A DNA stretch of 64,000 nt from Oikopleura dioica (lineage: Eukaryota; Animalia; Chordata). Within the stretch, counting starts at the first letter, position 1. The number at the start of each line of letters is the position of its first letter. The translations under genes were made by a program, and so were the position numbers. The notes below the pieces were generated by a model. That model ran no database searches, was not told the DNA's origin, and was given only the letters and a program-made list of their open reading frames with translations. Location of the stretch: positions 248,001 to 312,000 of the forward strand of contig OU015568.1 in assembly GCA_907165135.1 (NCBI GenBank), read 5' to 3'. This document shows positions 4,661-64,000 of this stretch, piece by piece.

Positions 4661-5357
4661 AGGAAACATTTTACGATTCTTTCCATATGTTGACTATTCA
4701 ACTTGAGTCGCGCTCAATAATTTTCGACGCTGTCAGGAGGTGATTAGCGCATAAAAACGTACGCAGAAGCGGATGTATAATAACGAGTTATCATTATTAC
4801 CAAAGGTGGAACGTGTCGTAAGCAGACCGTAAATGGTGATTCCTGTCGAAAAATTGATGAGCTAGTTGAAGTTTTTTGATGATTTGATTGATGAGTCCTA
4901 AATTTCAAAGTTTTCATTGTCGATAGAAGGTTCCGATTTCTAGTCTTGACAACCTGTGAGGGAAACCTGAGTCAGGCTTAAAATGACTTTAAAAAAAGTG
5001 GACGCAAATATAATGGGTCGGTATTAAAGTTTGTCTGAAATAATACCCAAGTTTTCTACTCAGGTATCCAAACCCAGGGAGAACTTTCCATTAAAGATGG
5101 AAATGTTGCCTTAAAAAATAAAATTTAAAACAAAAAATTTGTTATCCACTGTCGTCATTAAAAAAAAAACCGTGGAAGAAAATAGCCAGATTGCCATCAG
5201 AGGAAGACGAGAAAACAAATGAGAAGGCTTTTTTCATTGTTAATTATTTAGCCGGGAAAAGATCAAGTACGAGAAGAAATATTTAAGTTATTTGTGAATA
5301 TGTAACATGCAGCATGTTACATGCTGTGTGTTTCATGCGCTGATTCTTCGAATAAAG

Positions 5358-5492
5358 AATATTCCTCCTTCCAGCTGATAAATTGACTATTTGAGAATAA
5401 AACTGAAATTTTTTATCTTTTTTTTTATTTCACATATCCAGACAAAATGCCATACTCGTCTTCTGGTTCAAGTGTTTCTGTCAGCATATCGT
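5358..5492 (+). repeat. ~130-bp dispersed repeat homologous to 30931-31062
   Basis: Shared blocks ATTCCTCCTTCC, TTGACTATTTGAGAATAAAACTGA, AGACAAAAT and TTCTGGTTCAAGTGTTTCTGTCAG. Confidence 0.85.
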
Positions 5493-6032
5493 TCATTTGG
5501 GTCAGTTTTGTTTTCCGATTTATTTGCTATTTTCGAAGGAATCCATTTATTTTCGACAAAAAATCGTCAGAATTCATGGTCGAAACCGAGAATTTCGCTC
5601 GAAAAAGCTGACCCTGCCAAAAAGAAGTCGTTTGCTTGCCCTTTTGATATTTCGATCAAATTCTCTTTTCTGGCCATCTTGCTCGTCGAAAAACTTGCGG
5701 AAGAAAAAACCATCGTAGAAGGCAAAAATCGTTGAAAATAACTGAAAAATCAAGAGCTTCATTTTGATAAAGGTTCGAATTCGCGGCTTGTTGGATGATT
5801 TAGCTGTATTGCTTCTGTATTAATAATGAAATCAGTCCAGTTGTCAGTTCAATTAAAATAGATAATGCTTCAATTTTGCGCTTTTGATCGAAAACCGAAA
5901 ACTGTCAAATTTGATCAGAAATCGGCCGAAAAGGTCAAATAATCTGTAGCTCCATTTTAGTGAGAAAAAACGCTGCTGTCAAAATTTAAGAATTCAAAAA
6001 CCAAGATTCGAATTAAGAGAGATTTTCACAAA

Positions 6033-8512: not shown

Positions 8513-9029
8513 TGGGCCGAGTTCATGGATTTTCAGAAGAGGTAAAAATTGATGAATAAGGAAAAAAACCTAAGCAACTTTTAAACTTTGAATTTTTAAC
8601 AAAAAATTGAGTCCTAGCGCTACTTTTCTCATTTTTTTAATATAAAGTATTTGCGCTTTTTTTGTAGCTCCGTCATTATGATCCAATAAAGCCGCGCGCG
8701 GTTCTTTTTAGAATGATTTATTTGCGGCTTTTCTAAGTTTGGTAGAAAAAAGGATTGAAAAGCCGCGCGCGGCTTTCAACCACAATTATTTCATCATTTC
8801 TGCGCATTATTCGTCAGTTATTGAAATCCATTTTCAGGACTACCACAAAATGCGAAAACAAAGCATAAAAATGGACCGTCAAAAATTCAACGAAAACCAC
8901 CTGATAGACCAAGTGCCTCGCAAAAACCCGCCGTCCGAGTCCGCCCTGTCTGACAAAAACGCTCCTTCAAAACAACCTTTTGCGAAACGTCTTGGACAGC
9001 GAATCGGGAAGATATTTGGAAAGCACTGA
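8513..9029 (+). CDS. Possible small spliced gene of unknown function
   Basis: ATG with a GT donor at ~8542 and acceptors at ~8667 and ~8838; the phase of the last exon is ambiguous. Confidence 0.25.
8758..8776. repeat. GC-rich palindrome AAAGCCGCGCGCGGCTTT (also partial at 8688-8701, perfect at 27126-27143)
   Basis: The 18-mer is self-complementary and occurs three times in AT-rich non-coding sequence. Confidence 0.85.
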
Positions 9030-11941: not shown

Positions 11942-12029
11942 TTAAGAAGACAGTAGTTAATTTTTTGAGCCTGACTCAGGCCACCACACAGGTTTTCGAG
12001 CCAAGAACAGTGTGCCAATTTTAATTTTA

Positions 12030-13286
12030 GCGATTCTTCTTCTTCAATTTGTGCAGCTTGCTTTGGGAGCAGTTACAGTAGCCCAACTCAATTCAACAAA
12101 AATTTCTGAAAAAACGAATACGACAGAACATCATATCGATGAAATTTTGCTCGGGAATTTGGTTTTGGAGGTTGAAAATGAAGCGAATCTGGAGCTGCTG
12201 AAAAAAAACTCTCAAGGAAAATTTCAAACGAAATGAAAAATTTTGGAATTTTTAAAACAGTTTTCCTTGAAATTTGATGAAAAGCACGACATAAACAAAA
12301 CGCTCGAAGAATTCAACCTGACAATGTCGACTTTCAACGAAAGCAGCTCCAGTTTTCCCGAATTAGTGATTCTGCCAATTTTCATCGAGGAGCCCGAAAA
12401 CACGACCTTGCCGGCATGGTCAGTTTTGGAAGAAGCGATGAGAAACTTGACAACTGTCGCGCTTGGAGAATTTCCAAATACAGGAACAGCCGTAAAATAA
12501 GCTCTTTTTTCCTTCGAAAAGGATTTTGATTCTTCAAAGACCTATTTAAAATAGGCTATTTTCATTTTGAATTAACAAACTCTCTGTTCGATAAAGAAAT
12601 CTAAGCCAGATTTATTTTAAAATGCCGCGCAATCAAAGCCTGGGCTCGGAAACCTCTGTAGAAAACCTGAGTCAGGGTTCTAAAAAAACTTGAATGAAAA
12701 GCAGCTGCGCGGTTTTTCAGAACCCTGACTCAGGTTTTCTTCAAATGTTGCCAGCAGAGGTTGCAGAACGTATGTTAAAAATCGGCGTCAGGGATATTTT
12801 CATTAAAGTTTGTCAGGACCCTGACTCAGGTTTTTGCTCGTGTTTTCGTTTACTAAGAAAAGAAATCATTGAAAATTTTTTCTGATACAATTCTACAAAA
12901 ACTTTCAAGTGATCAACTATGTTTTCGAGCTCTCAAAAGTGTCCAGCATCAAATTTCTGCGCGAAGTGAATCTTTCTGATGAAGGGCTTTTTACAATTTT
13001 GCTGGTTTCCGTCTTTGGCGGAATTTTTGTGCTTCTAATTGCGATCATTGTTCTTGGAGGTTCGTAATTCCAACTTTTAAATTCGTGACTAAAATGCTCT
13101 AGCCTTTATTTACAACAAACGAAATACATCTGGAGAGCTTCAAATCTCTGCTTCAACAAATCAAGTTCCAGGTTGAGCTCTTTCTTGATTTTACCCTCAT
13201 CCTTTTCAGGACTCGAAAATCCATCTTTTACAAACGAAAAAGCAAAACGAGCGACGCTAGAGGAATTCGAAATAACAACTTTTTAA
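12030..13286 (+). CDS. Type I single-pass membrane glycoprotein
   Basis: Hydrophobic leader (ILLLQFVQLALG), many N-x-S/T sites, TM segment LFTILLVSVFGGIFVLLIAIIVLG, and a cytoplasmic tail ending NPSF...EITTF*. Exon boundaries are approximate. Confidence 0.6.
12642..12760. mobile_element. MITE-A copy (TIR GGCTCGGCAACCTGTGTAGAAAACCTGAGTCAGGG), intronic
   Basis: Left TIR at 12642, right TIR CCCTGACTCAGGTTTTC at 12723, and an extra right-TIR core at ~12820. Confidence 0.75.
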
Positions 13287-13897: not shown

Positions 13898-16800
13898 GGT
13901 TTGATTTCGGCAAACAAGTGTCCTATCGGATTCACTGATTTGAGAGAAAGTGACGAAGATCCCGAATTCAAGCATGGAAGCTGCGCCAAAGGTATACTTC
14001 TTCTTCATTGATAGAGAATGAAGAAAAAAAATCATTTTTCGAAGGTTGCAATAAGAATTGGTAAAGGACCAATTCTTCTACAATATAGCTAGAATTGGTA
14101 TGATGCCGAATCTTTTCTCGGTTAGGGATTAGGGTTAGGACTCCTAACTTAGGAGGCTGAAAATACTTACTGGGGGTCCAGGGGGGCGAGGCCCTCTGGG
14201 TAAGGCTTAAGGGGGGTCTCGAAGGCGTAGCTCTCTGGGTGAGGCTTAAGAGTTTCATGCTTATTCTAGCCAAATTATAGAAGAATTCGTGCTGTACCAA
14301 CTCTAGTTGCATTCTTCACATTTGTTAAACAAAAGGATAGGGCTGAAAATCTCATAAGCCCAGAGAGTGTTTTTTTTTCGATTTCTTACAAAGATACCTT
14401 TTTAAGGACCCCCCCCCCGTCAGCTTTTTCCTCCGAAAAATTGAAATTTATAAAAACAGCATACTTTTGGTTCTTTATGTGTCCTTCAGTTAAACTTGCT
14501 TCAAAAACTTGATTAGATGGAGATTTGACCAAGAAAAATCAACTTGAATGCCAAAATTAGGGCAAATTCGTCAATTTTCGGCGAAAAGCCCAATTTTCAA
14601 ATGGGGGGTGAAGGAGTCGAGATAGACCCCCAAAAAATGAAGCCTCAAAATCGTTTTTTGACCCGTAGAGTCCATTTCCGGGGTCAAAATTTTAAAATTC
14701 CGAAATTTGATTTTTCAAAAAAAGCTGACGGGGGGGGGGTCCTTAAATTGCTTTAAATTCAGTTGTGAACAGCGATGATCAATCAGGAAATTCGGCTTAT
14801 TCAGTCAAACTCTATATTTTAAAGATCAAAATCTGAAAAGGCTCATAAGAGCCGATTAAAAAGGTTTAACATGGCATGAAGCGCGCGATTACTGTGTCCG
14901 TGTTTACGAGGGCCACTTAGCGGATGTCGAGCACAATGCTCCGAACTCTTCTCGCATGAGGGCGCTAGGTGCGCGGAGGACTCTGAGTCCTCCGAACATT
15001 GCGAGTCCAGGGAGAACTGATGAGTTGGCGATAAGACCTAAATACGCTAATTGAGCGTAACACCTGGGAGTGAGCACAGCAGGGGCAGAGGGGATATTTT
15101 TTTTCGACCCATGCTAGTATCAACTTCATTATCAATTCTAGAGGCGAGTAAGAGTGATAGCGTTATTTCTTTGGATATATATGTATCAGAAGAAAGCTCT
15201 TTTCGAGCAGAATATGGATTTTACGGAATTGAAAGAAAAAGTTGACCTTATTTCGCGCCTGTTTCCGAAATATTTCAAATCAGAGCTATGAAATGGACCT
15301 TTTCGATCGGTTTGTTTACCGCCTCTGCCGAAACAAATGAGACTCTACCACCTATTTCCGAAGATGCGGGGTCAAAAGGAAAACCTCATATTTTCCAATA
15401 CAATTCCAATTGGAAATTGAAAATTCATGAGAAAAACAAGCGTATAAAGTAGGACCAAAAGCCCTTCCCCTGTGATCGATGATCAGTGTTCCTAGATTGG
15501 TGGTTCCTAGACCCTGAGCCTGAGAGTTCTGCTTTTCAAACTTTATCATCAAAATTTAGTGTTTTTGACCCTTTATTTAGATTCAGCGCAAAATTTCACT
15601 CTAAAAAAAATTTTTTTAAGTTCTTAATAATTTCAAAAAAATGAGCGTGGAAAATCAGTTTACCGAAATTAAGCTCATTCAGGGGGTACTACGCGATCAG
15701 AAATGATAGCGGTGTTTGAATAAAGATTGACACACTTCACGCTGGGATGAGGTAGCTTCACGCTCCCTTCCGTACTTGCTCACCTCCGGCTCCCTGCAAA
15801 GAGCGCTCTTCAACGTCTTTTCCGCTCTTCCACCTCTTTTTCCGAGCGCCCTCTGGCGGATGGAGTTCGGAGCATTATGCTTTTACCCCAACTTAGCTGT
15901 GCCGATTAATTTCGCCGAAAACAAGGCAATTTCGCTTCTCGTCAAGAAGAATAAAGAAGGAAAGCTTCCCTTTCTCTGGCTCGGATTCACTGACGAGGAT
16001 CGGGAAGGGTACTGGATGAACGTTTTTGGAAAACAAGCCGAGTTCACCAATTGGGGAAGAACTTCCACTGGCGTTTACAATCCTGATAACGCTCGTAAAA
16101 CCATCAAAGGTTGAGAAAACTTGAAAACTCCGGAATTAATTATTATTTTCAGTTGAGGGAAAAAGAATCGAAATCGCTCAACATTGTGTCAACACGAATT
16201 TCCGATGGAGTCAGCTTTGGGACGACAACTTTTGCAACAGAAAGTATGTTTTTATTTATTTTTTTAACAAAAAACGCATTCATATTTTATCAAGATTCAT
16301 GGCAGTTTGTCAGGTGCACAGATGCCCAGCCAGCGGTTGCAAGTACGAAAGTGGAGAGTGCCGTCCTGGCTGGACCGATTTGAGGCCGAAAACGGACGAT
16401 ATTGAGGATGGATATTGCGTGACGCTGATTAATAAGCTGCCTTGGGATTATGCGAGAATCATGTGCGACAATTTGGAGGCCCATCTTGTAAGGAAAACGA
16501 GTTCGAAGATTAATTATCTATTATGAAGTATCTGTTGATCTGGGCTCTCCAACCTGTGTAGATAACCTGAGTCAGGGTATGAAATATCTTTGAGACCCTG
16601 ACTCAGGTTTTCTGCACATGATGCCGAGCCTAGGCATGGGTAACTGACAGCAAATAACTGAAGCAAAATCACTGTAGTTTTGAATAATTGAAAAGCGGCT
16701 CAGTTTTTGATCTCGGAAAGAATTCCTAACAAAACAATGAATAATTTGATAACCAAATTTGTCCGGTAAGTTATTGAAGTTCTGAGTTCGACTTTCATTA

Positions 16801-19021: not shown

Positions 19022-22000
19022 TTATTCAGCATGTTCCTTGACGAAGGATAACTGCTCCTGAAGTTTTTGAGTATCGTTTTTTAAATTTTCGATTTTGATC
19101 CTCCAGGTCGTTTTTTCTTTTACAGTTTCTCGGAAAAGAATTCTTTCCTGTTCTTTTTGCGATTCTTCAAGTTTCGAAGTTGCTTCAAGTTCTTTGATTC
19201 CAATTTCTTTGTTTTTTAGGACGAATTTCTTCCTTGATTTCAATTTTTCAATATCTTTCACTTTTTTGGGGATTTTCGCGCAAGTTTTTATTTAAAAAAA
19301 AAACGCATGAAATAGCAATAAAATCCTTTTTTGGGGCTCAAAAATCTGTGTAGAAACTCTGAGTCAGGTCTTCCAAGCCCTAACTCAGATTTTAAACACA
19401 GGTTCTTTAGCCCTATTCCTTGCTTTTTGATTGAGAGAATTTATTTTTGCAAGAATTTCTTCTTTGTCTTCGAGAAACTTCTTTTGAAGCTGTTTTTGCT
19501 CGTCAATTTTTCTTCTGTTCTGTTCTTGAATATTTTCGTTTCGTTTTTGAAGAATCATTGTTTTGGTGACGAGTTCTTTCTGCGCTGTTTCGAGCTCCTC
19601 CGATTTTTCTGCCTGAAAATTTTCGTCAATTTTTGTCAAAAATAGAGAGAAACCTTTCTTTTTCGTATTCTTTCATCAAGGGAAGCTATTTCCTTCCTGA
19701 GCTCATTCACAGTCGATAAATTCGAATTCTGAAGCTTTTCTATAGCAGATTTGATTGTTTCAAGCTTCAATTTCATCCTAAAATTAAGCTGTTATTTTGA
19801 AGCTCAATTCCGATTTTAATTGCTTTTTAGATTTTTCACCAGCTGAATCTTCGTTTTTCCTCGATTTCTTCAGAAGTTTCTCGTTTTCTTCGAGTTCCAA
19901 ATTCAACATTCTTAGATTTTCATCCCTCAAATCACGTGATTTTTCAAACAGAGCGTCTTTTTCTTCAAGTTCTGAGCGTATTTCCTCTTCTTTTTGGAGT
20001 TTTTCAGAGTCTTGAAGAATTTCATTTTGCAAAAGGGTCATTTTGTCGCTTTCTTCCTTGATTTCTTTGATGATTTTTTCCGTTTCTCTTTTCTCTTGGT
20101 CGATTTTTTGGCTTATCTTTTCCTTCGCTTCTTTGAGTTTTGAGATATCCGCAGTAAGTTCTGCTATTTGATCCTTTAGCTTTGGTCTGGGCTCGGCAAC
20201 CAGCGTTGAAAACCTGAGTCAGGGTTTTGAAAGAAACGAAGCCGAAAAAGATTCATTGAGTTTGCAAAGCGGCTTTTCCTAACCCTGGCTTTTCAAAACC
20301 CTGACTCAGGTTTTCTTCACAGGTCGCCGAGTCCAGTAGCTGGCTGTTTTGCTCGTCAAAATTTTTTCTTTGATTTTCATGTTCTTTTGAGAGCTTCTTC
20401 TCGTCGTTTATTTTTCTGGCGATTGATTTCCGAATCAAAGAGTTTTTATTTTCTTTGCAGTTGATCTCATCTTCAGCAGCCAACACTCCGACTTGCGATT
20501 TTCTGAAACTAACTCTTGAATCTTCAAGGCGCTCTTTCGCGATTTCAAGCGAAACATCTGATTTTTCAAGCTTCATTTTTGCTTCCTCCATTTCTTCTTT
20601 GATTTCTGAGTTGAGCATTTCTTGAGATTTGATAATCTCTTTGATATTTCTAATCGCCAATAAATTGTTCTTGAATTTTTCCTCGTTTTTGAGCGACAAG
20701 GACTTTCTTATATTGAGTTTAATAATTTTTTTAACAAAATAATTTTCTTCGTATTACAGTCGACTCTGGCAATTACGAGCCTTTTTTGTCGGGAATTTCG
20801 TGAAATACTCGTAATTCTCCGAGTTGGAAAATTTGGCTCGATTTTCTCTCGATTTCATTTTTAAGGACCCCCATCAAGAATTGCGAAAATGGGCCTCCTT
20901 GGAGCTAGTATTTCTCCGAAGCTATCTTATTTACACCCTTAATTTAATTGGAACTCGAATTTAACACTCGACTACAACCGCTTCCCTTATGATGATCCCG
21001 AAAATCACGGTTGTTCAAAAAATCTAGTTCTACCTCCTCAATGATATACAGGCCGTTAAAGATCAAGTTGATAGGATCAAGCTTTTTCAGGGATTTAAGC
21101 TGAGGGAAACCCTTAATTTTTTCAGGAGAGAGCTAAGGCTCTAAGCTACCACCGTACCCCTTTGGAAAGTTTTTTGTCAACGAAAAATTAAAATAATATT
21201 CAGAGACTTTCATAAAAAAAATAATGCAAATTTTCAATCTGTTGAAGCTGCTTTAAAACCATCTGAAGAGCCGGAGACTCTTAAGCCAAAGATTTAACCC
21301 GGTAACAGGCGCGTGGCCGTCTCACGGCCACGCGTGGAAATGAGTAGCCAATCGCATGCCCGGATCCATGTTTTCACTCAATCACAGACAGGCAAAAGCG
21401 TAGGCAAAATCGACCACCCTGTTAGCGGGTTAATGATTAAAATCAAGCATTCTCAATTTTTTCGAAAAAAATTATTTTCGGTCGATGATCCCTTGTTTTC
21501 AAAATTGGCGGGTTTTTGTCAAAATACTCGTAATTCTGCTACTCGTAATTGCCAGAGTCGACTGTATAACTAAATTCTTAAAAATTCGAAACTCTTCGCG
21601 AAAATTCAAAGACTGGGCCCAGTCTTCAGAAGTATTTTTCAGCTTGTTTTGAATCCAGGCGAGCTCAGCCAAATTCTGGAATCGCGAGATAACTTGATTT
21701 TAATTTTCAATATCAAAAGATGGGTTTTTGCTTTCACCTTTTTCTCTTCTGGAAAACTCCAAATTGTTCATTTTAATCGCTTTAGTATGCTTTTCAATCT
21801 TCGAGCTAGCTAAAATCATGAATTTTGCATCGTTATCTTCGCCCATCTTTCTAGCCTCCTCCTTTGTATCTTCAATTTTCTTCCTCGTCGAATAAAGTTG
21901 GTGCTCCAAAAGGCCGGCAATGATTTTGGAGTCCTTCGAAGTCCCAGCCAACATTTTTCGCCGACGAACTTGCTCAACGGAGCGGCGGAAGGTTTCGCTT

Positions 22001-22492: not shown

Positions 22493-23107
22493 TTGGAGAA
22501 GTTACATGAGTATATTCGTCTTTTGTCGCGAAAAAAAAATTATCAAAAAATAAAAAATTTATGTTTTTATGGTGTCCGATTTGATTGACGGCGGGAGTGA
22601 GTCTTTGTCAAGACTTTAGCCATTGAGGTAAGATTGATAGTGAAGGTTTTTTTAAAGAAAAAATGCGCGGATATCTTTCAATTGATAAAGTCATTTATCA
22701 AGAGTAAATTTATGACGCAAAAATTATCAATATTACGCAAAGAAAGCTGGAGAACCAAAGATTGCTCCAGGCTCACGTAAAATTCTTTTCTTGAAACAGC
22801 GAAAAATCCTGATTTCATCGTTTTGTATTTAAAGCGCCTCAAGAATGCAAGCTGAAAAGAATTTTTCCTTACAAAAATAATGAAATTCAATTTTCTCTTT
22901 CCGATTGCTCAGAGTTTTTATTTTAACAGGTACCGTAAGTATTTTCTCCAAAAGAAGGTTTATCGTTAAACAAAAAAAAATTCATAAGCAGCTTATTATT
23001 CAGAAGTTTTGAGGGCCGAGAGCGCCTTATTCGCATCAGTAAACAAATTTTCGTTCGCATAAAAACTCATTTTTTTCCGAAAAAACTGTAATCAGCAAAT
23101 TGTGTTT

Positions 23108-23170
23108 TAAACCTGACTCAGACTTCTAAAAGTTTTTAAAGACCCTGACTCAGGTTTTCAAACAGGTTTC
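23108..23170. mobile_element. MITE-A remnant
   Basis: AAACCTGACTCAG ... GACCCTGACTCAGGTTTTCAAACAGG. Confidence 0.6.
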
Positions 23171-23807
23171 AAAGCTTGAAAAAACTTATGATAAAAATTG
23201 ATGATTTATCGTATTTTTTCTTTCAATTTCCAGGAAGCTAAGCTCACGAATGAACTTAACCAGCATCTAGATAATCCCGTGATTGATAGAAAATTATGAA
23301 AACAACTTGTCGCGCAAAAAGCTCGGAAATTGATCGGACGTGGAGACAAATTACCACTCGATTTATAAGTGCGTTTTGATCTGACTAAATCTGCCACGAA
23401 TTGGAACGTTCGAAAATGATTTCTCTTTTTCTAGCGGCGATTTTTTTTCCTGAAACAAAGGCGATCCCGACTTTTTTACTCGGTATAATTAAAGAAAAAT
23501 TGAGAAATAGAAGAGAGTTTTCCATTTTGTGAAAGAGTTTTCAGAGTGACACCCTTATTCGTATTATTTTTAACGACGGTTTCTTCGAATTTACACAAAT
23601 TTTCTCCATTTCAGAAATTTCATGGCAAAAACTTAGAATTCGGCCAAAGATATTGAAAATTTCTGCGAGAAAGTCGAAAATCTGCGTAAATATACAAAAA
23701 TATCAAAATTTTGGAGCTCTTTTTTAGAGGATTTATCAAATGAATTTGATCAAGAGACACTGGCATCATAAAAAACGTTTGATAATTTTTTAAAACCAAT
23801 CTTATTC

Positions 23808-24900
23808 TAGGCCCAGAAGACCAAATCCCTATCGAAGCTCCCAGCCCCTTATTTGCATCCATCGCCGAAGACCTGAAATCCTCTTCCCTCGACCCTCCAT
23901 CTTTCCAACCAGTCGAAGCTCGTCAAGGAGTCCCAATCTTCAACAATTTCAACCCCATCGAAGCGCTGCTACAAATCAACGACCAAAAACCAGCAAAACA
24001 GCCAAATTTGAACGTCATCAACGATGATTCTTTCAACAAATTTCAGCAAATTTCATCGATGATGAGCGCGATTTTGAGCGACGCGGGGATCGGAAATACG
24101 GCGCCAGAAGAAGCTGCTGAAGAATCTGAAGAATCAGAAGAATCAGAAGAGCCAGCAGAGCCAGAAAATGAAAATTCTAGAGCGGCGATTATCCCTTCTG
24201 CTTCGCAATGGCCGCTGGTTGCTTTTAGCTTTGAGAATGCGTTTTTAAGACAGTAAGTTTAATTCTCTTTCCTTGAAGATTTTTCATGGTGAAAACCTCT
24301 AATAACTCCAAAAAAAAACAAAAATGTTATAGAACTTGTCCTCAAATCTACGACGATGAAGCTGAAATGCCGGCCGCTGAGACCCAACTCGACGGAATCA
24401 TCAATCAGTACTGCTCGATGATTTCGAACATTATCAACCTCAAAAACGACCAGTTGAATTCGATGGTAGCGCAGTTGAGGCGATTTGTGCTGAAAAAGAT
24501 GGTTTTTCAGTTGGCGAGTATTTGACTGTTTTTTGTTTCTTCGAATGAATGATTCTTTGTCTTTGTAAAATATTTCTAAATGAATAAATGATGGAAATTT
24601 CAAAAAAAAGTAGAATTGAATTCTTTTTTCTTATCAAAATTCAACTGATGCCAGTGATTTGCTCTTTCCGAAGCCGCGTTATCTGCATTTGCGTTTGGGC
24701 GATTCTAGAGTGTTATCAGTCAACAAGAAAATTACGCGTTTGGAAGAGCGTGGGAGCCAAAGTACTGGGCATTCCGAGGTCAGGATGTTCGTAAGAATGA
24801 ACGGCGCCCTCCCTTCTTTTCCGCAAAACACTCAAGCCACTACCAACCGGTGCATAAGGCATAATACGCAATGCGACTCTTTCTGGAACGTGCTCAATTA
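23808..24900 (+). CDS. Unknown protein with acidic low-complexity region (partial model)
   Basis: Open exon 23808-24256 (PEDQIPIEAPSP...EESEESEESEEP) and a further exon-like segment at 24333-24518. Confidence 0.4.
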
Positions 24901-25496
24901 ATTTTTTAGGAAGTATTTTGAATCGAAAAAAAAACAAGAAAAAAAGAGATGAGAATAAAAAGAGATTGTTACGACGAAAAAAGCATAAACGAAATTAGTA
25001 TAGATAAATAGTATTTATAACTTAAAAAGCCATAATTTTAACGCAAAAAAGGAATGAACATTTCTCATTTTGAAAATTTATTTAAACAAAAAATTTTAAT
25101 CAAAATTTTGGGTGGCGTCAGGAACCGACAAAAAATTTCGACAAATTTCCAGCGGGCGGCTGGTTTGCCGCTGATTTGCCGGTTAGCCGAATCCATGCTT
25201 CTGATTGGTTGAAAATTTTCACGCAAAAATTTTCGAAATTATATTGCGGGTTTTTGACACCTTCTTCCATTTCGATCGAAATTTTGAGAATTTTCTGACA
25301 AATCAGATTTCCGTATAATGCCGATAGGCCAATCAGATTCCGGAAAAAAATTCTTAAAATTCATTCAGAATTTTATCATTCAGAATCAAATTATTGGCCG
25401 AAAATGTTCGATTCCCATCAAAATAAATAACTAAGGGTCTCACTCTCTTAAATTGGCTAAACTACTATGAAAAGAATTTGAGTACGAAAAAAGTCG

Positions 25497-43800: not shown

Positions 43801-46800
43801 GACTCCGTCGTTGATCGTTGCGTATCCGACTTCGGGGAAAAAGACAGTAAGTGAGTAGTCACCGTCACCCTGTGGTCCGACAATGCAGTCAATAGTGCCT
43901 CCAACAGCGCTGCAAGAGGAAATAGCACAGGGAGCATTTCCGATGTAGACCTCAGCGCCAGTACAGGTTCCGTCTTCAGTTCCGTTGAGAGTGATAGACA
44001 GAACATCTCCAATAGAGAATCGATTGCTAGAGACAGCGGAAACACCTGGAGTCAGTGTCCAATCATGATGGTATCTGTTGCTAACGGAGTCCCACCAGTA
44101 GACCATTTCTTCTTCATCTCCATCACCGTTGTCGTATTCAAAGTTGATTCGGACATCAGCTCTTTCTCCAGTTCCAGAAATCTCACCGATCATTGGTGCA
44201 GTGACAATTTCTATTTGGTTATCAGAAATCTTTTCAATCGTACAATAGCCTTCAAGCCGCTCATCTTCTCGTTCACAGAGATTTCTTCCCCAACGACTGA
44301 TTCGAAGATTGTGGTGTTCAGGGAAATCACCATAAATCGTCGTTGTTGTCATTCGGATCTTGTGACCGCCGAAATGCGACCCTTCGTTGTATTGCATGGA
44401 AGTGATGAAGATTGATGGGTACTCCCGGCCGTAAGTGATCTTTCCGTAATTATCAGACTCGAGCCAGACATCGTATTTCTGCGATGTGTATCCAGTTGCT
44501 GTCCATTGGGATCGGAAGCAAGCTTTTCCTTCGCAAAGCTCAAGATAAGTGTTTGTCAGCTCAATTTGAGATCCGTCAGAGACACCCTTCATAAATGCTC
44601 GAAGATTATCAGGAGATGTGGGGAACTGATAGCTGACATCAAGGGAGAAAGTGTTTGTTTGATGCGCAAACTCATTGACGTCATCTTCGACGGCAAGCTG
44701 TGTGAAATCAAAAGAGAAATCTGTCTTCAAGGTGTAGGACCCTCCAAGAGAACCAGCAAGAGTGATGAAAACATTTTCATTTTCTGGCTCTTTCTCGTGC
44801 CACGTGACGCCGATTCCAGCAGAGCTTCCGGGTTTTCCAGGAGCAGAAACGCAAACAATCTGCGTCTTTGTGTGAGTAAGAATTTCGCTGCAGCAAGAAA
44901 CTTTGGTGTAAGTGTAACGATCGAATTTCAATCCATCACCAGTAATTGTAACGAGAGCTCCTCCTTCATTCGAACCGATTCGAGGCGAGACAGAGTCAAT
45001 CGAGGGACTCACAGTAAACTTCTCGACTTGATCAGAATTGATGAGAACGTTTCCTCGGCCAAACTCAGAAACTTCAATTTGAAGATCTTCTCCGAATGGC
45101 CAGTTTGCTTTTGGAGCGGGCATCGATGCAACAACTTGAGTGGCGGAAACGCTCTCGACGGTGAATTTAATTTCACCGTAAGCGGATCTGCCAACGACGT
45201 TGAAAGCACCGGGGCAATCAGTTTGATCAGCAAAGTCATCAGAAGTGATAGTCAGAGTTTGCCCGTCGAATTCGACTGAGGATGCTTTGGGAGTAAGATC
45301 GTAAGAGTAAGTATGAGTCGTACAAGCGGTGCAATTAGCAGCGACAGTCTCTGAACTTGCAATAGAGACGGAACCTCCATCAGTCGCACAGTCGGTAGAT
45401 CCGGTCCACTTTCGCCATCCTCGAACCATCAGAGGGTTGGTATTTGCTTTGTATCCAGCAAGGGAGAGAACAACTTCCTCTTCGTAATTCAAAGGAGGAA
45501 GAACTTCGATCTGGCCATTTGCGAAGATCGAATATCCATCCATGTATCCAGAAGTGTAGAAGTAAGTGCCAGGTGCAGCAGTGACAATTGTCTCGACGGT
45601 TCCTGCTTCGCCAGAGACGATGTTTGAAACAATGTCGTCTGAGAGTTTTTCTTCATTATTCAAAGAGTCCGTCGTTCCGATCTGAACAGTGAACTCTTCG
45701 TTTGAAATCCAGCTCCAAGTGATTCGGTCATTTGCCCGGACAGTCAATTTCTGTGGGAACCAGGAAGATCCAGTCAAGATAACCTGATGAGTTTCGTAGC
45801 GGCCACGAGTTTTACAGGTGACTTCTTGCCATGTGGTCGATTCAACATCGCAAGGAATGCCTCCAACATGAACTTGAACCTCTTCTGAATTGGTTCCGAA
45901 GCCACGTCCGTTGATCGTTAGAATTCTTCCTCCAGCAGTTGATGAATGAGTTGGAGTGATGCTGTCGATTGTCAATCTGTAACTGATGAGAATGGTTGAT
46001 GTCCAGCCGAGGTAAATGGTTTCTCCGTCGACCTTTTTAAACAAACAGATTTTGACTTCAAAGTCGGTCTTCGCATCAGAGGGAGCATTAACGTAAGCGA
46101 ATCCGTTGTTCGCGAAGTTGAGAGTGGCAATCCACTCGCCGTCGAAGAAAATGTCTCCGGACTCGACGTCCGCTGGTGCGCTCGAGAGTGAGAAAGCGAT
46201 TTCTTGATTTCCCTTGACTGACCAATCGATTCGATCGGAAGTGAGGTCGTATGATGCACCCGAGTAGGCAAAAGAGCCGAGAACGACGCCGTTTTCAAAA
46301 GCAATGTCGACAGCTGCATCGGTTGTTTCAATTGTAGGAGAAAGGCAAACAATCTCATCAGCAGAGACACTGATGATTTTAGACTCGACTCCATCGAAAA
46401 ATGGAACTTGTTCGCCGATTCCGACGCCTTTTCCAGAAATTGTGACCATGTTTCCACCATAAGCGGGACCAACAGATGGAGAGACACTGACACCAGCGGC
46501 TGGCGGATTCACGAGAATGCTCAAGTCGCCACTGTTCAAAAGTGCGCCGAATTCGGTGTACGCGGTGATTGGATGAGAGCCATAAGGAAGAGACTGGAAG
46601 AAAATCTCCACGGAGGTTTCACTTGTCTGGACGAATCTGCACTGAGTATCGGCATAGCAATATTCACCAAAAACATCGCCGATTTTCATGTAAGCAATCG
46701 TTCCAACAGGCGCGTCAAAATTGACAACGAAGCTAGCTTCCCCTGACGCAGGAGTGTTCACTTGAGCTGCACTTGTTGACGCAATATCAGCGGGCGCATC

Positions 46801-49800
46801 AAGATACGAAAATGAGCATTCTTGATCGTCAGTGTTGCAGACAGCGGAAATGCCATTTCGTGTCACGACAACTTGGGGCTCATCATGAACAGTGCGCAAA
46901 AAGGCACCGGGGATTTCTTTGATCCAGATACCGCCAGATCGAACGTCAACGGTTTCAACATGAAGTTCGACACCAGTCAAGTTGATATTTTGAACTTCGA
47001 TTGGAGCAAAGTCGCCAGGGACGGCCCACCAGAGCTGCAAAGTGTAACCATCATTGCAATTACCATTCGACTCAGCGTTGACCATCGCGACATCACCGTG
47101 AAGCTTTTTGAGCTCGGAAGTGAGGACATCATTGATGTCGGGTGCTTGAATGTCGATTTCTGGAGTAGTTTGTCCGAGATACGAAAGTCGAAAGAATCCT
47201 TGAACACCTGGACTGACGGGCTGGTGCTCGTGGACCTGGATTTGAAGCTCGGCGCCCCATTGATTCGTCAGCGTGTAGAGTTTTCCAGTTGTTTCTTCAT
47301 TGAAATTGTTGAAAACAATAACATCTTCGACAGTTACGGCTGTATTGGCTCCGCCGATGACTTCGAAGTCTGGAATATCAATTCCACAAAGAGTGTCTTT
47401 CAATCGAGCAATCATTGCATTTTCATTTACTTTCATGTCGATATTTCCTACAGGCGTGTTTGGTCTAATTGGAACATCGCTTCTGAAGACTTCATAATCA
47501 TCTGAAGCCACGCCGAATCCGAGTTCGTCAAAATAGCCCCACCGATTACGGAAATATAGCCGTCTCAAGTACACATGTTCAACAAAATCGGGGTTTTGGT
47601 TGCTCGTCAAATCAGTGTTGGCCAAAATCAAAGCTCTCAAGTCAATACACATGTGGACCCAGCTTGTTCTTGACTCCATATTTATTTCTTGTGGTGACAA
47701 AGACATTTCAAGGAAGCTCAAATTGTCAATAATTTCCCCGAAGGTTTCAGAAGATCCGTTCGCCATGTATCCGACTTCAAGGAACATTCTTGTATTATGA
47801 CTGTTTTCGTCGAGCTCGCCCTTGTGCGCGAAGCAGAAATGAGGAACAAGATCAATGTGGACAGGTTCGGCTGCCGGAAGCCATTCACTCTCGCCGATGG
47901 CGAAAAATTCACGCCACTTGGCGTAGTAAGACTTTTGGCCGCAGAAACTCTCGACGTTTGTTTTACCATAAGGAAATCGCCACTGAGTGGAAGAATCTTC
48001 ATTCGATGGCATGTAGAATGGCTCGAACGATCCAAGAGTCTCGCATTGAGAAGAAATGAGAGTTTTTGTCAGAGCACCGTCATTTTCCTTGTGTTCATTC
48101 CAAGTGCCAAGAGGAGTCGTCTTGCTCTGGCCATTTGAATTAGCCCATCGAAGACCAAACTTAACTCGATCGGGGTCACCGGAAACAATGGCGACCTTGA
48201 TATTTTCTTCCTGACTTGAAGAAAGAATGTCGACTTCTTGAACTTCCTGGACAACCTGAAGCTGGTCGTTTTGAGCGACGTAGCTATCATATTCTCTTGG
48301 CGCTGGTACGGGATCATGTTGGTAGTTGATTTCAGGATCCGGGCCATGGAAAATGAAGCTCAGTTTGTTGTAAGAACGGCCAGAATGCTCGACAAAATTA
48401 TCGTTGAAGATATAAGATTTGTCAGCCTCGAGGAACATTCTTGGGGAGGCAGACTCGCCTCTATGCGGTCCAGCCGAATGAGGATTAAATGTACGGATAT
48501 TGCTAAAAAGGTGCTCTTGCGTGTCAGGGTGGTTTCCACCGTCGGTGTTCATCCACATAGAGCCGACGTCATCGCAGAATTTGTAAAGCGTGTAGTAACC
48601 GGTAATCGGGGGCGAGAAAGCTCCAGTCATTTGGCCAAAGAACCAATCGGATCGTTCGTGGTAACGTTTTCCCCACCATGGTGCGTCCCATTCCTGGTAG
48701 AAATCCTTTGAATTGTGGGCTTTGTAAAGTCTTCGCGAGAATTTTGTTCTTTCCTCTGCTCCAAACTCCCACCACTCATGTTCTTCTCGAAGATCCCACC
48801 CATCGGCTCCATATCGAAACTGGTCAGTATCCATTGTCCACTCAAATGCAGTGGTGATTTCCAAATCAGCACCGGCACCTCCAATATGCTTCGCACCCTC
48901 TGCGATAGCGACACTCGCTCTTGTATCGCAAACAATCGTGCGAGGACTCGCCGAGACGATATCGCATGGAACACCACCGACGGTCACTTCGGCCTTCTCA
49001 GCACCGACATTTGGCCCAGCGAGACCACGACCAGTGATTGTCACTCGCGTTCCTCCTTCGTGATAGCCAGAAGTTGGGGTAATCGAATGAATCGAAGGAG
49101 CGAGGGTGAATGATCGAACTTCTCCGTCGCTGTCGAAAAATTTGGATTCTTGCGAAAGTGAAGTGTAGCCTCGGCCATGATTCTTTACTCCAAGAGTCAC
49201 GTGACCAACATAGTCGGTCTCAACTCGGCAAGAGAAGTAAAAGCTATTGTGATAGCCGTGATTTCCAATCTCGATCGGGTCGAATCGGTAGACTTCACTG
49301 TTCTCCTCGTCTTCGTACGCCAAGTGGCACTGGCCAACGACCTCGTTATTATTGATCAAAAAATCAACGCTTTCAAGATATTCTAGTGTTTCGGTGTCAT
49401 AATCCATCGAGGGAACATCATCTCGGTTCGCCGGGTTCCAGTGAAACTTTGTCGCGCCCTCATCGCAGAAAAACCTAAAGCTGGTACTGTTCATGCTGCA
49501 TCCATTCGATCCCTCGTCAGCTCGACAAACTGCATACTCCCGGGTGAATTCGTCAAAGTAGGTCGAGTCAAGAATCGCACCAGTTTCATCATTACGAGCT
49601 TCCATCGCAAGCGGAGCGAAACAGATCTGGGTGGTGTTCTTTTTGCGCCAAACGTCGCCCCAGAAGAATTCCTGACCAGGAGTTTGCCCACTGTGCTCGC
49701 TTTCCCACTCGTAAACGAGATCCGATCCAAATTCTTCGAAAGAAAACCACTCGGTCCATCGTGGCTGTCCGACAGCTCGCATGCTGTCAACATTCTGTCG

Positions 49801-51041
49801 GATGTAATCGGCGGACCACTCGTAGGTGCCAACTTTGCACATCCAATCGCATTTTTTACATCCGCAGTGCCAATTTGCCGCGTTGCCATTGATGAAAACA
49901 GCAGTTCGGTATTGACCGTAGTGAGGAAGACGGTCAAACACCTCGCAGAAAATCTGAGTTGGATTGTGGTAGTGAGCTATGGGAATGCACTCGGCGACAG
50001 GGGACCAGGAGCCGGATTCTCTTGATTCAAGGAAGACCTTGATATCGCTGTTTCCTTCACGGCCTTCTTCTCCGAAAGAGTCCAGCTTTGATCCAAAGTT
50101 TTCTCCCTCGATCGTTAGCGTGAAGCCTCCGTTGATAGAGACATCCCCGTTCAGCACATCGTAGACAACCGGCCAGCCAGGAGTATCATTCCAGCCTGAT
50201 CCACGAGCCTTCGAAGACGATTCGCTCTGCTTTTGCGGTGGCTCCCGATAATCTGGATTCCGTCGTCCGGATTCGACTCGAGATCGCGGTCGGCTTTCTC
50301 CATTGAAACTTCGAGGAATCGGGTCGATTTCTGGTGCTTTGATTCGGAAAGAACAGGCATCAAGTTGGCATTCCTCATTATTCAAAAAGAGAGTGTGCCT
50401 TCCGTCGTCAAGCTTTGCTCGACAGACGATGTTGGTCGATGATTCCTCTTCGATCAAGCACGGCGTAAAATGTCCTCCATGACATTTGAACTGGAGATCG
50501 AGGTTTTCTTCGTCAGCAAAATTTCCGCCAAAACTGAATTTCAAATTTCAGTTTCATAATTTAAGGACCACCCCCGTCAACAATTTTCGAAAAATCTATT
50601 TTCGGAATTTTTAAATTTTGACCCCGGAAATGGATTCTTTAGGTCAAAAAACGATTTTGAGGCTGCATTTTTGGGGGTCTATCTGAGATAGACTATCTCG
50701 ACTCCTTCACCCTCGAAATTGCGCTTGAAAATTGGATTTTTGACGAAAAAAATTTTTATCAAAAATTATATTTCCAGAAGCCAAAATATGGCTGTTTTGA
50801 GATTTTCGATTTTTTGAGGAAAATTGTTGACGGGGGGGGGGGTGTCCTTAAATTTAATTTTATTCTTGTTAATTTTTCGAGAAAAGCTAATTTGGGTTCC
50901 TAATGTTGATAATACATAATTTATTTACCTGAAAATAGTGTTTCCAGCTTCATCACCGCCGACAGCCGAAGCCGACTTGACGGGATAGTCTGCCCTTGCT
51001 GCGCCAAGCAGCAGGGTCAGAATAAAGTCTCTCTTTTTCAT
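34852..51041 (-). CDS. PKHD1L1: Fibrocystin-L (PKHD1L1)-like giant protein, ~5,200 aa, six exons, with C-terminal cbEGF repeats and no TM
   Basis: Signal peptide MKKRDFILTLLLGAARA; many IPT/TIG repeats (ISPxxGSxxGGTxITIxGxGF); PA14-like segment; two G8 domains; beta-helix repeats; six DxDEC EGFs. Exons 51041-50929, 50533-35937, 35879-35576, 35529-35460, 35412-35173 and 35130-34852 sum to 15,603 nt, divisible by 3. Confidence 0.9.
50565..50847. mobile_element. Kolobok-like MITE (same family as 14406-14742) in intron 1 of the PKHD1L1-like gene
   Basis: TTAA|GGACCACCCCCGTCAACAATTTTC ... GAAAATTGTTGACGGGG...GTCC|TTAA. Confidence 0.9.
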
Positions 51042-55399: not shown

Positions 55400-56390
55400 A
55401 AAGAGACTTTTCGAAAAGAAGGTTGATGGCTTAGCATGTCAGTTGATTTCAGGAATGGATTGCCCTTTTCGAGGGAACTTGAGAACCTGACTCAGGTTTA
55501 CTCCACTGGCTGCTGAGCTCAGGCGGCCTGAGTCAGGCCTTCAGTCTTTTTTTTATCAATCCATAACAGTGGATGTGGCGATGGAAGCGGAGACGTCAGA
55601 TTAGACTCACTCAATTCGATTTTCGAAGTCGATTACTACGAATCTTTACCGTATCAAGAAGCTGAGAAATTTTGCCTGGTCATTGGAGGAAGTCTTCTTG
55701 AAAAGCACGCAAGGATCTTTCCGTTTGATCTTTGGCTTCCTAGAAAACAGGGACTTTGTTATAAATATCTGGCTTATGGTTCTGGAGAGATTTTAGGTGA
55801 TTGTACTGAAAGGTTTGGTTTAAAAATTCGGTTGAAATTATGAAAATATTTTAAAAGAAAAAAAACTTCAGTCATTTTCTTAAACCAAAAGCGTCAAATT
55901 CGCCTGCAAAAAGCAAAAATGCCATCTTCTTTCTTTCGAAGAAAAAGACGGTTTTTACGAAATCCTTTTCGACGAAAATTGCCGCGATCAATTTTTTAAT
56001 TTTGTGAAAAAAGAAGAATTTTTTATTCTCGACTCCAGAACCGGCAGCAGAACCCAGATAAAAGGTTTGTAGTAATTATGATCGATGATCGATCAAAATC
56101 TTTTAAGAGAGTTTAACGCGGTACTGGCCTGACGATCAGACCCAGCCTGTAAATATCATTGTGAAACATGAGATCAAGCTTGACGGCAGAAAATATAGGA
56201 AAGTCTTCACTCAACAGATTGGCGCGGCAACCTGTGTGAAAAACCTGAGGTCTGGAAAATGTTTGAGCAAAAGCCGCTACGGTTTAGATCCTGACTCAGG
56301 TTGCAGGTTGTTCACACAGGTTGCAGAGCTCAGTTCAACAATTTTCCCCAGTTTGAAGCTTCTTATCTAAAGACGACAAAAGTTTGATTG
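55400..56390 (+). CDS. Small C-type-lectin-like gene with MITE-A-containing introns
   Basis: LPYQEAEKFCLVIGGSL motif in the exon at ~55570-55750, then further exons at ~56039 and 56110-56220. Model approximate. Confidence 0.45.
56221..56330. mobile_element. MITE-A copy
   Basis: GGCGCGGCAACCTGTGTGAAAAACCTGAG ... CCTGACTCAGGTTG...TTCACACAGGTTGCAGAGCT|CAG. Confidence 0.8.
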
Positions 56391-59009: not shown

Positions 59010-59189
59010 GATAATGAAGATTGCGAAGATTTGTGAAGAATGAACTTGAAAAATGCTGTTTTATGAACGCTGAAAATATAGATAGTGCGATTGAAACTAC
59101 AAAAATCAAAATTGAAAATTTTTCTTTTGAACTGGTTTTCAAATATGTCGGTCTGTGGATCAATAATTTATTTTCCTGATTGTCAGAAC

Positions 59190-60643: not shown

Positions 60644-61019
60644 GGTTCTTATTTAAAAGTTCTGTTTTCGAGCGGTCGCTAAATTTTGCCCTGTCTTGTT
60701 GGTTTACTCTTTTCGAAAATGCAAATATTGAAAAAGCAAAGGTGGGTAGCTTATATAACAGAACTGATAGACGAACTTTCTACTGTAACAGTTATAACTT
60801 CTTACAGTAAAACACGATTTTTAATGAATTCGCTCGTGGGCTTTATTGTCAGGATAAATAGAAATAGCAATTTTTTTCTTCTGGACAACAACTTTTTTGG
60901 ACGAGGGAGTTTTTTCACGGAGGCAAAAAGCCTCTTGAACTTTCAAGTGAAAACGAATGAGTGTGAATGATCTGACAGAAAACACATAATGAAACTATTG
61001 CACCACGTTCTTGTCGTAT

Positions 61020-64000
61020 TCATTGAGGAGCGATGACGACGAGCAGCATCGGCAAGTGATGAACCATTTCGAGGAAGCGCGGCGCCAAGCGACGGAGAGT
61101 GTTGGTAGTGAACTCGCAAGGAGGGAAAATGTGCAAAATGTGAGAGCTGCGTCCGCCGGCGACGTTGACGATTCCGGCCGAGCGCTTCTCGGTCAAGTAC
61201 TCGATGAACTTTTTCCGCAGTGCCTCGGTTTGCAAATGTACGTCGCGTTCGTCAGTGCCGCATGGAAGGGCGACCATTGTACAGCAAGTGGAACTCTTTT
61301 CGATTTGTTCAGCCACTTTTTCCAGCTAAAAATGGGTATAAAAATCATTGATCCTCCAATCTGGGACGAGAAACCTCTGAATAAAACCTGAGTCAGATTC
61401 CTGTTTGATAATAAGCCCTCAAACCCCAGCTCAGGTTTTTACACAGGTTCCAAAACCTCGGCTTCTTTAAAAAGAAGCCGGATAACGCCTTCACCGGAAT
61501 ATAATTTCTAAACTAACCTGGTTGGGTTCAAGCCGCATTCTTTGAACAATCTTGAGCGTCCCCATTCGGTTCTGCTGTGCCTGACCAGTTGCATCTCTGT
61601 CTCGTGGCAGAAATTCCATCGGAACGTCTGCGTTTCCATGAATCAAATTAAGATGAACGGTGGCTGTGTCGTTCTTGATATTCAAATATCCTTGCCAGAG
61701 CAATTTATGACTAGTATTTCTTGTGAGTAACCTGTTTCGATTTAAGAAGAAAATTTACCGTTCAAGAAGTTGCGCACGATCGTTGACAGAAAGCGGTCTC
61801 ATAGATTGCTGCGGCTGTTGGGAAATAAAGGGTGGCATTGGTAGCCGTTGGCCCGCCTGCACATGCACTGTTTGCTCTGGAACGCGGCTGACAGGGACGC
61901 GAGAAGCTCCACCTGTCGAGTAGGAGAGAATTTGCGGCTGAGGCGGAGGCTTTTCTGCTTCTTCCGATTTCTTCTCCGTCTTAACGGGCTCTGGCTTTTG
62001 CACCGGCTGGGAAAGAATATGAGCTGGGAAATGACTTGCGATAAAGATACCTTTTGAGCAACATAACCCGAGTGCGCAGATGGTGGGAGGTTCACGAGCA
62101 CTAGAATAGAAAGTTCAAGAGGCATAAGAGGAACTTTAATTTACCTTGACGCCCTTGGCCAATGGGTTGATACATTCTAACAGTTCCAAATGACTGCGGC
62201 GCGATGAAGTTCGATACGACTTGAGCGGTCTTTTGGCCTTGCCCAACCTGCTGTGCGTTGATGACTGTGCCGGATTGCATCGCCACTGGTCGCTGGATAA
62301 TGACCTGCTGAGAGGCAGAAGAGCTTGTGGTCATTCTCGGGCCAGTAATGATCTGCGCTTGAGTAGTCAGCGGCATGTTTGGACGAAGCGTTCCCTGTGG
62401 AAGAGAAGCAGGAGTGCTTGGTGTCAAGATAACTGGCCGGGGAACCTTAAAAGGATGAGAGTCAGGGAAAATAAACGGAGAATGAGTACCATGACAGCAG
62501 TAAGTCGAGGAGAGAGGGCAGTTGGTTGAATCGTCTGAATCGTCGGCTGCTGAATGGTCATGATTCCCGTCGGCTTCTGAGTCGGATGAAGCGTCGTAGA
62601 AGCACCCGCTAATCTGATCGGCCCAGGAGTGTACCGCTTCGAAGCAGGCGGAACAATCGTCTCCAGCTAAAGAAGCAAGATATCAGGTAAATCCAGGTAA
62701 GAAAAGGGTACCTTTGAGTTGTTGGGAAGTTGAATTTGAACAGGGGTCGAAAAGCCGGAGTTGGAAGCGTTGCTGATTTCGCTGGTTCCAGAAGCAGTTG
62801 AAAGTTTTCTCTCTACTCTTTCTAACAAATCCGACTTGATAAGCTCTGACTGGCTGTGTCTTCGATCCGGGAGTGATACTGAATGATGAATATTAGTTTC
62901 TCCTGCTTTACAAGCACGATTGTAAGAGCTCAATCGCGCGCTTTCAAAATATATTCCGATTGCTCATGTTTCTGATTGCTCAAGTCTATCTACCTTTGAC
63001 GGGAGAACTAAGTTTTGGAGCAGCTTGATTTGCTCTGAAGGGAGATGTATTTCTTTCTTGAGGTTTCGCTTCAATTTTAACTTTAGGTTCATCAATGACA
63101 GGAGCAGCAGTCGTGACTGGAGCCGGTGGAGCAACAACAGATGGTTCTGGCAGTTGTTGAGGTTCAGCCTTTATTTCAGTTTTCTTGACTGGTTCCGGAG
63201 CTGCTTCAGATTTAAAAGATGGTCGACGTTCTTGTAATTTGAAACGTTTTCTAAAAAGGTTTTCGGGAAGATCAGCTGGAGCTGGACTAAACAGCGGCTC
63301 GCTCTTCTTCGTTGGAGTCTCTGGCTGAGCTGGCTTGGGGATGACAACGAGGTTTTCTTTGATTTCGGTAGCTTTTTGGTCGTCTCTGACGACTTTGGCC
63401 GGCGGTAACTTGGGCTCAAACGGCTTCTCAGGCGAGATGACAGTTTCCGCTTTCTTTTCGGCGCTTCGTAGTCTTCCTCCAGCCCCGCAAGGGCCGCGTC
63501 TAGCTCTGCGTTCCTGTCACAGTCATCCTTCGGATCCGATTTTTGATCTTCCTCGGTTTCTTTCGCCTCGTTCTTGTCTTCGAAAGAGAGGTTTTTCACC
63601 GCATCGTTGACGATCGCGTTTCCTTCGTCGTCATTTTCCGGAACGCTGGCTCTTCGATACTTGCCAGATTTTTTCTTGCTCGAGCCGGACTTTGTCTTGC
63701 GTCGCATCATATCTTCCATGCGTTCTCGAACAGACTGATTCGTCTTGTCGACTTCGTGGATGTCCAGCGGCTCAGATGATGGCTTCGGTGAGAGGATTTC
63801 ACTAGTCGGAGAGCTAGAATGTGCGGCGGATTCTTGTGAAGAAGCGGAGATCTTGCGACTTGGCGAGGCGCTTGTTTGTTTCTTTTCTTTGTGCTTTCGT
63901 TCTGCTCCTTCGACGTCAGAGCTGGTCTTACGGCTCTTTTTGCGCTCTCTGCTTCGCTCTTTCTTTTCCTTTTTGTGCTCTTTTTCGCTCTTGGTGGAGG
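61020..64000 (-). CDS. SPEN: SPEN/SHARP-like protein, 3' part with C-terminal SPOC domain
   Basis: LLERYPVLWQGYLNIKNDTATVHL, LKIVQRMRLE, LRKKFIEYLTEKRSAGIVNV, LHIFPPCEF and LLVVI, preceded by long K/E/S- and P/Q-rich regions. Runs off the window. Confidence 0.85.
61372..61460. mobile_element. Decayed MITE-A in a GT-AG SPEN intron
   Basis: AAACCTCTGAATAAAACCTGAGTCAG ... CTCAGGTTTTTACACAGGTT. Confidence 0.6.

Follow-up and report, generated by a model that had tools for sequence, protein, structure and literature searches.

Can a small transposable element that lands in a coding exon become an intron and, if so, what would supply its splice sites? This question is raised by a 64,000-nucleotide (nt) stretch of Oikopleura dioica DNA (assembly GCA_907165135.1, contig OU015568.1, positions 248,001 to 312,000; hereafter the window), in which copies of one family of miniature inverted-repeat transposable elements (MITEs) lie inside coding exons of a protease-mucin gene and a coiled-coil gene. 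The non-canonical introns of Oikopleura are reportedly of the GA/GC/GG-AG kind, a description credited to Denoeud 2010. We consider it likely that the copies, which appear hAT-like, entered these exons after this lineage split from its relatives and that they are removed from the transcripts as in-frame introns.

An earlier annotation made from the letters of the window (the sequence-only reading) had proposed a single family with terminal inverted repeats (TIRs) and about 13 copies. The family is real. The 35-mer given for it matches the window five times at ≤3 mismatches, against zero expected, and a census of the 64-kb window, made by BLAST queries with two copies and by scanning for the inner TIR core AACCTGAGTCAGG, yielded at least 15 copies or remnants, including two that had been missed (Table 1). 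Aligned copy ends gave the TIR consensus CTGGGCTCGGCAACCTGTGTAGAAAACCTGAGTCAGGGTTTTGA; the TIR is ~38 bp long and opens with C[T/A]GGGCTCGG (also written C[T/A]GGGCTCGGCAACCTGTGTAGAAAACCTGAGTCAGGG), and the elements range from 76 to 176 bp. Between three and five of the copies coincide with a whole intron, and no autonomous transposase partner was found in the window. The TIRs of copy c28374 differ from the consensus by 32 to 41%, which indicates that its insertion is old, while those of c20190 differ by ~7% and c27492 has two TIRs that hardly differ from each other. The remnant c55479 is old as well, since the related contig L004 contains a shortened version of it. When JGI metagenome contigs were scanned for the paired TIR core, two contigs matched; both have a GC content of 63 to 64% and are unrelated to the window, and we treated these matches as chance.

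The evidence that three of these copies inserted into exons comes from relatives. With the exon that follows the 26333 intron as query, a search found a protease-mucin orthologue (P0001; 96% identity), whose coding sequence lies on the ENA metagenome contigs L001 and L002. Given that these contigs share 84 to 92% nucleotide identity with the window, at a synonymous divergence (dS) of 0.5 to 0.86, and that they retain introns, they are genomic DNA of a related lineage. For the coiled-coil gene, a protein homologue search with the upstream exon gave no match, and an exhaustive representative search returned an orthologue (P0023; 66% identity) on Logan contig L003, which is genomic because stops delimit its open reading frame (ORF) at the points where introns occur in the window.

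At three loci we found the feature that is typical of introners, namely a transposon copy in a coding exon whose orthologous site is empty in relatives. Copy c27492 is absent from both L001 and L002, which read TGGTTCAAAG^TCAGTGG (the caret marks the site) in a continuous ORF, NWFKVSGDD, with a single copy of the target-site duplication (TSD); in the window, TGGTTCAAAG is followed by DNA that runs from CTGGGCTCGG to CCGAGCCCTG and through ATCCAAAG before TCAGTGG resumes. Copy c28374 is absent from L001, where ACGCCAG^GATCGACA is again part of a continuous ORF with one TSD copy; the window has ACACCAG, then an insert from GAGAGGGCTCG to CCACCAACAG, then GATCGACA, so that the extra DNA is exactly 28369-28552. 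Copy c20190 is absent from L003, which reads AATCAGCTA^AAGGAG in an uninterrupted ORF (..QNNQL/KEVIADL) with a single TSD copy, ATCAGCTA; the window, in gene sense, has AGCCAGCTA, then an insert from CTGGACTCGG to CCGAGCCCAG and ACCAAAGCTA, then AAGGAT. A small intron at ~27830-27900 is common to the window and L001, and the introns that are absent from L001 are therefore interleaved with retained ones. The comparison with orthologous loci that the sequence-only reading had called for thus uncovered empty sites at 20187 (L003), 27489 (L001 and L002) and 28371 (L001), but an intron already in place at 26333 (L001).

The same comparison defines the TSD. Empty sites have one copy of an 8-bp sequence and occupied sites have two, and the flanks of five copies match at 6/8 to 8/8 positions (Table 1); among random pairs of 8-mers from the window, six or more matches occurred in ~0.6% of trials. 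The trinucleotide CTG/CAG is missing from all three empty sites (L001 and L003), and CWG therefore represents TIR positions 1 to 3 rather than a TSD. It follows that the flanks previously described as CWG-like belong to the element, and the suggested PIF/Harbinger affiliation has to be abandoned along with them: a PIF/Harbinger MITE would have a 3-bp TSD (TWA or CWG), and TSDs of 3 or 5 bp were both dropped in favor of 8 bp once the three empty sites and five flank pairs had been compared. hAT elements such as Ac/Ds and hobo have a TIR terminus of the YAGRG type. Most TIRs of the window family end in CTGGG, compared with CAGGG, TAGGG or CTAGG in some copies, and the 8-bp TSD together with the CAGGG/TAGGG-type ends points to a hAT-like MITE. 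In the second TSD copies at 27609-27616 and 20177-20186, which belong to independent insertions, the first base has changed from G to A, and the sequence immediately ahead of the candidate acceptor is A(T)CCAAAG in both. This likeness could be convergent tuning of the 3' splice region or coincidence; a "CCAAAG tail" common to the elements themselves was ruled out, as the tail lies in the second TSD copy in both cases.

To define candidate introns, we listed donor/acceptor pairs that lie ≤45 nt from the element ends, end in AG and join the flanking ORFs without a stop. At c20190, the candidate GA donor is at TIR position 4, and the AG at 20180 (AAAG, in the second TSD copy) would leave CTG plus CTA in the mRNA. 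An alternative acceptor at 20174 would give a 160-nt intron and a K-to-L change, and the single in-frame GT option is implausible, since it would add 12 element-derived residues and delete four conserved ones (KDQI). At c27492, a GG donor at TIR position 4 would be joined to the AG that ends the second TSD copy, with CTG left behind. At c28374, the candidate GA donor is formed by the last two bases of the first TSD copy and the acceptor AG by positions 5 and 6 of the second, the same CAG/GA occurring in both; this is the sole AG-ending register that reproduces the L001 reading (TTTPGST). Among the listed pairs, there was no in-frame GT-AG option at 28369 or at 26333. Under these candidate introns, the mRNA would retain 0, +3 or +6 nt at the three sites, and only 4 to 14 nt of each intron would come from outside the element. 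All of these leftovers are multiples of three, as would be expected had selection retained only insertions that could be spliced in frame. Given the strong selection on the host genes, it is most likely that the three exon inserts are spliced out as new introns with GA or GG starts.

Sequence conservation in the host genes bears on whether the inserts are removed. Four exon blocks of the protease-mucin gene, located between and downstream of the inserts, have ratios of nonsynonymous to synonymous divergence (dN/dS) of 0.028 to 0.048 relative to L001 (dS, 0.5 to 0.86), and the coiled-coil exons that flank c20190 have ratios of 0.16 to 0.22 relative to L003. Copy c28374 is diverged, yet the ORFs downstream of it are intact. 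Two studies provided four DNA samples, of which two may be the source of the assembly, and in the four samples 0.91 to 0.97 of the sampled words from 27380-27720 were present; about half of this interval consists of the c27492 element and its junctions, so a private allele is an improbable explanation of the young c27492 insertion. Given the selection on the ORFs, the age of c28374 and the presence of c27492 in four DNA samples, we argue that the elements are removed in frame. The proposal that this family creates introns is thus strengthened: three copies lie in exons that are under strong purifying selection, and the corresponding sites in relatives are intronless.

The likely sequence of events begins after the split of this Oikopleura lineage from its relatives, when copies entered coding exons at 20187, 27489 and 28371. 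Since each element, if read through, presents an in-frame stop within 8 to 30 codons, survival of the gene would require that the element be removed from the pre-mRNA. The donor would be a G followed by a base other than T at the TSD/TIR boundary, either the GA that ends the first TSD copy or the GG or GA at TIR positions 4 and 5 after CTG, and the acceptor would be an AG that lies within the second TSD copy or closes it. Transcripts of young copies would then fold into a TIR stem, placing the two candidate splice sites ~12 nt apart. In the predicted folds of young copies, the TIR stem is 35 to 40 bp long, with the donor at its base and the acceptor 10 to 12 nt beyond, a modeled geometry that is compatible with pairing bringing the two sites together.

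Table 1. Copies and remnants of the MITE family in the window, with their TSDs, candidate introns and predicted intron hairpins (TSD sequences of c20190 are in gene sense)
Copy	Position	Strand	TSD copy 1 / copy 2 (match)	Candidate intron	Hairpin (kcal/mol; z)	Context
Remnant	~3890-3945					New relative to the earlier list
c4945	4945-4990					Remnant from BLAST/core scan
Remnant	~11967-12003					New relative to the earlier list
c12643	12640-12757					Non-coding gap between ORF blocks
c12778	12778-12842					Remnant adjoining c12643, same non-coding gap
c16543	16540-16633 (94 nt)					Non-coding gap longer than the element
c19335	19332-19407	-				Inside or at 5' end of ~155-nt intron, coiled-coil gene
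c20190	20187-20336 (150 nt)	-	GCCAGCTA 20337-20344 / ACCA[AA]GCTA 20177-20186 (7/8 + 2-nt indel)	20180-20333, GA-AG, 154 nt, +2 Leu	-74.7; -7.9	Inside coding exon, coiled-coil gene
c23092	23088-23178		AAAAAACT 23080-23087 / AAAAAACT 23179-23186 (8/8)			
Degenerate copy	26336-26449	+		26333-26453, GA-AG, 121 nt, product IIPSATCQAG	-26.6; -1.7	Makes up the intron; trypsin domain
c27492	27489-27608 (120 nt)	+	GTTCAAAG 27481-27488 / ATCCAAAG 27609-27616 (6/8)	27492-27616, GG-AG, 125 nt, +1 Ala	-74.2; -10.9	Inside Cys-module exon, protease-mucin gene
c28374	28371-28546 (176 nt)	+	CACCAGGA 28363-28370 / CAACAGGA 28547-28554 (7/8)	28369-28552, GA-AG, 184 nt, element + one TSD, scarless	-40.0; -2.0	Inside Thr-rich exon, protease-mucin gene
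c55479	55484-55521					Solo-TIR remnant
c56221	56218-56333	+	CTCAACAG / TTCAACAA (6/8)			TSD-flanked, 3' end of coding sequence
c61372	61369-61452					Degenerate copy

Several observations weigh against this account. Around the c28374 junction, the sequence is a low-complexity Thr/Pro repeat that differs from L001 by a 21-nt in-frame indel, which allows two alignment registers, and it is the TSD that favors the register in which 28369-28552 is the extra DNA. Stems as strong as those predicted could equally hide the donor, and the evidence as a whole comes from a handful of loci in one 64-kb window. Reads from three bulk RNA runs and one single-cell run with the same species label produced no junctions over 23000-28900, where they gave a few partial matches of 90 to 95% in Thr-rich low-complexity DNA and a conserved trypsin motif, and no indexed RNA run contains the stretch. 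Since c27492, with its nearly identical TIRs, could be very recent, and since dN/dS at such a young insertion would also be compatible with a recent disabling allele, the lack of RNA junctions raises the possibility that the exon inserts are not spliced and instead represent disabling or truncating alleles, either pseudogenes or segregating nulls. We regard this as quite unlikely given the dN/dS of 0.03 to 0.05 in the downstream exons, the intact reading frames beyond the old c28374 copy, the presence of the c27492 insertion stretch in DNA of four samples and the fact that every leftover is a multiple of three. The c27492 locus also has two in-frame GT-AG pairs, 27481-27620 and 27525-27616, and the GT at 27525 is a good donor (GTCAGTAAG) whose use would make 36 nt of the TIR part of the coding sequence. 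Removal through cryptic GT-AG sites of this kind would dispense with non-canonical donors altogether. It is nevertheless an unlikely general explanation, because GT options are lacking at 28369 and 26333, because the only one at 20333 would gain 12 residues at the cost of four, and because the shared intron at 26333 begins with GA in L001 as well.

Another explanation is that the elements struck pre-existing introns, such that the family reshapes introns without creating them. This is probably true at 26333, where L001 also has an intron, and it probably holds for c19335, c16543 and c12643, which sit in gaps longer than the element. At c19335, the in-frame donors are GG or GA only and the surrounding intron is ~80 nt longer than the element; an older small intron was probably struck beside its 5' end. 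At 20187, 27489 and 28371, however, the ORF of the relatives is continuous and the introns consist almost entirely of element, making pre-existing introns a very unlikely source of these three. The fact that each gene has been compared with one outgroup lineage also leaves precise intron loss in the relatives, with the window as the ancestral state, to be considered. We find this scarcely credible, since the introns in question are transposon copies with TIRs and 8-bp TSDs, each empty site has a single TSD copy, and the missing introns are interleaved with retained ones. Moreover, L001 lacks CTG at 27489 and so does not correspond to the predicted GG-AG splice product. Taken together, these comparisons favor insertion of hAT-like MITE copies into exons, with subsequent in-frame removal, as the likely history of the three loci.

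The intron at 26333 has a different history. It consists of a degenerate family copy with a 10-bp terminal inverted repeat (AAAGGGCTGA/TCAGCCCTTT), and the Pfam Trypsin profile coordinates of the two exons abut across it. The corresponding intron of L001 (L001 positions 100-366; 267 nt) is AT-rich, has GA-AG ends and reads GAAAGGGTTGAG...AACCCTTCTTAG; only the ends of the two introns align, over ~12 nt at each end. Judged from this alignment, the 26333 intron is older, was already present in the relative and is not a recent gain. The sequence-only reading had included it among the introns attributed to the family and had itself stated that an older intron at the same position in orthologues would count against its proposal, which is what L001 contains. 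Within the terminal inverted repeat, the window and L001 differ by a paired change, GGGCT/AGCCC to GGGTT/AACCC, a single event that we consider suggestive. Together with the similar remodeling of the two second TSD copies described above, this change fits a broader reading: much of the GA/GG-AG intron class of Oikopleura could be the residue of exon insertions by hAT-type MITEs, in which the TSD/TIR junction supplies both splice sites, the TIR hairpin joins them, and later selection acts on the extreme ends only. We put this generalization forward tentatively and hold it to be rather doubtful.

The fifth element-bounded intron that had been proposed, 56221-56333, was not supported, whereas at 20180-20333, 26333-26453, 27492-27616 and 28369-28552 the simplest frame-restoring intron is as originally described. 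In the distant contig L005, the orthologous ORF ends with ..YRKI and a stop just upstream of the c56221 site, and the inferred pre-insertion ORF of the window ends seven codons past it. We therefore interpret c56221 as having inserted at the 3' end of the coding sequence, with ~7 codons left to the inferred original stop.

Additional features of the host genes and their surroundings were observed. The protease-mucin gene (25900-29500, plus strand) combines a trypsin domain with repeated Cys-rich modules and mucin-like Thr-rich linkers in a mosaic, and it retains 96% amino acid identity to L001 at a dS of at least 0.5. L001 lacks a further intron of this gene (~26988-27219 in the window) and has TGIITKC without interruption; the intron is single-copy in the window. 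One of its ends reads CTAGAGTT in reverse complement, and its flanks, ACAGGAAT and AAAGGCAT, resemble an 8-bp TSD. With a donor GT from the end of the element and an acceptor AG from its second TSD copy, this would be a canonical intron whose removal leaves two additional residues (TGMSIITKC). Counting this intron, the window has four putative gains, three with empty sites from one family and one from another; the protease-mucin gene contains three of them. The coiled-coil gene region contains an 826-nt element (20748-21573) with 32-nt TIRs that are 91% complementary, which is absent from the distant orthologous contig L003. On the minus strand, 35926-50544 is a single uninterrupted ORF of 4,872 amino acids in an otherwise intron-dense, MITE-rich window, and it contains no copies of the family.

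An intron gain for which both the occupied and the empty site are at hand is rare, and here there are three from one transposon family, in a chordate whose extreme intron turnover and tolerant spliceosome are already known. Should RNA data show that GA/GG-AG splicing takes place at the TSD/TIR junction, the unusual donor class of Oikopleura would gain a concrete mutational source, the introner model would extend to hAT elements, 8-bp TSDs and non-GT donors, and these loci would become defined substrates for asking whether TIR pairing offsets weak splice sites. Relative to hAT MITEs of the Ac/Ds type, the window family is alike in its 8-bp TSD and in the CAGGG/TAGGG ends of some copies; it differs in its mostly CTGGG ends, its long TIR (~38 bp) and its lack of a transposase partner in the window.

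Introners occur in many eukaryotes, including the tunicate Styela clava (PMC9860276, PMC12130899), and those of Micromonas and Aureococcus (Huff, Zilberman and Roy 2016) are summarized in PMC11282704 as having one splice site borne by the transposon and one by the TSD. The window family resembles them as a short non-autonomous element with TIRs and TSDs that enters exons, has copies in unrelated genes and has a TSD that would provide one or both splice sites. In contrast, its donors are GA or GG rather than GT, its TSD is 8 bp rather than 3 bp, its copies are few and many of them are not introns, and we infer splicing from the conservation of the ORFs.

Closer parallels come from appendicularians. 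The MITE-derived introns of Fritillaria borealis (Henriet et al. 2019) are summarized in PMC11282704 and PMC13326754 as AG-AC or AG-AT introns with an exonic TAC, whose non-GT donors are tolerated by a U2-type spliceosome. The two systems share an appendicularian host, TIRs and TSDs, lineage-specific positions and non-GT donors; unlike the Fritillaria introns, which are mostly AG-AC/AG-AT with exonic TAC, the window candidates are all G[A/G]-AG, the Oikopleura pattern. The proportion of non-canonical introns is reported to be elevated in Oikopleura (PMC7789003), and Table 1 of PMC3443670 places Oikopleura among the taxa with intron gains by transposon insertion, citing Denoeud 2010. Our observations agree with what is reported on intron turnover and non-canonical introns in Oikopleura dioica (Denoeud et al. 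2010) in the genus, the non-canonical donor class, the many lineage-specific introns and the proposal of transposon insertion as one source. The window adds a named family with an 8-bp TSD, a build in which the splice sites would arise from the TSD/TIR junction, gains backed by empty sites in sister lineages, a leftover rule of 0, 3 or 6 nt, and selection on the host genes after insertion.

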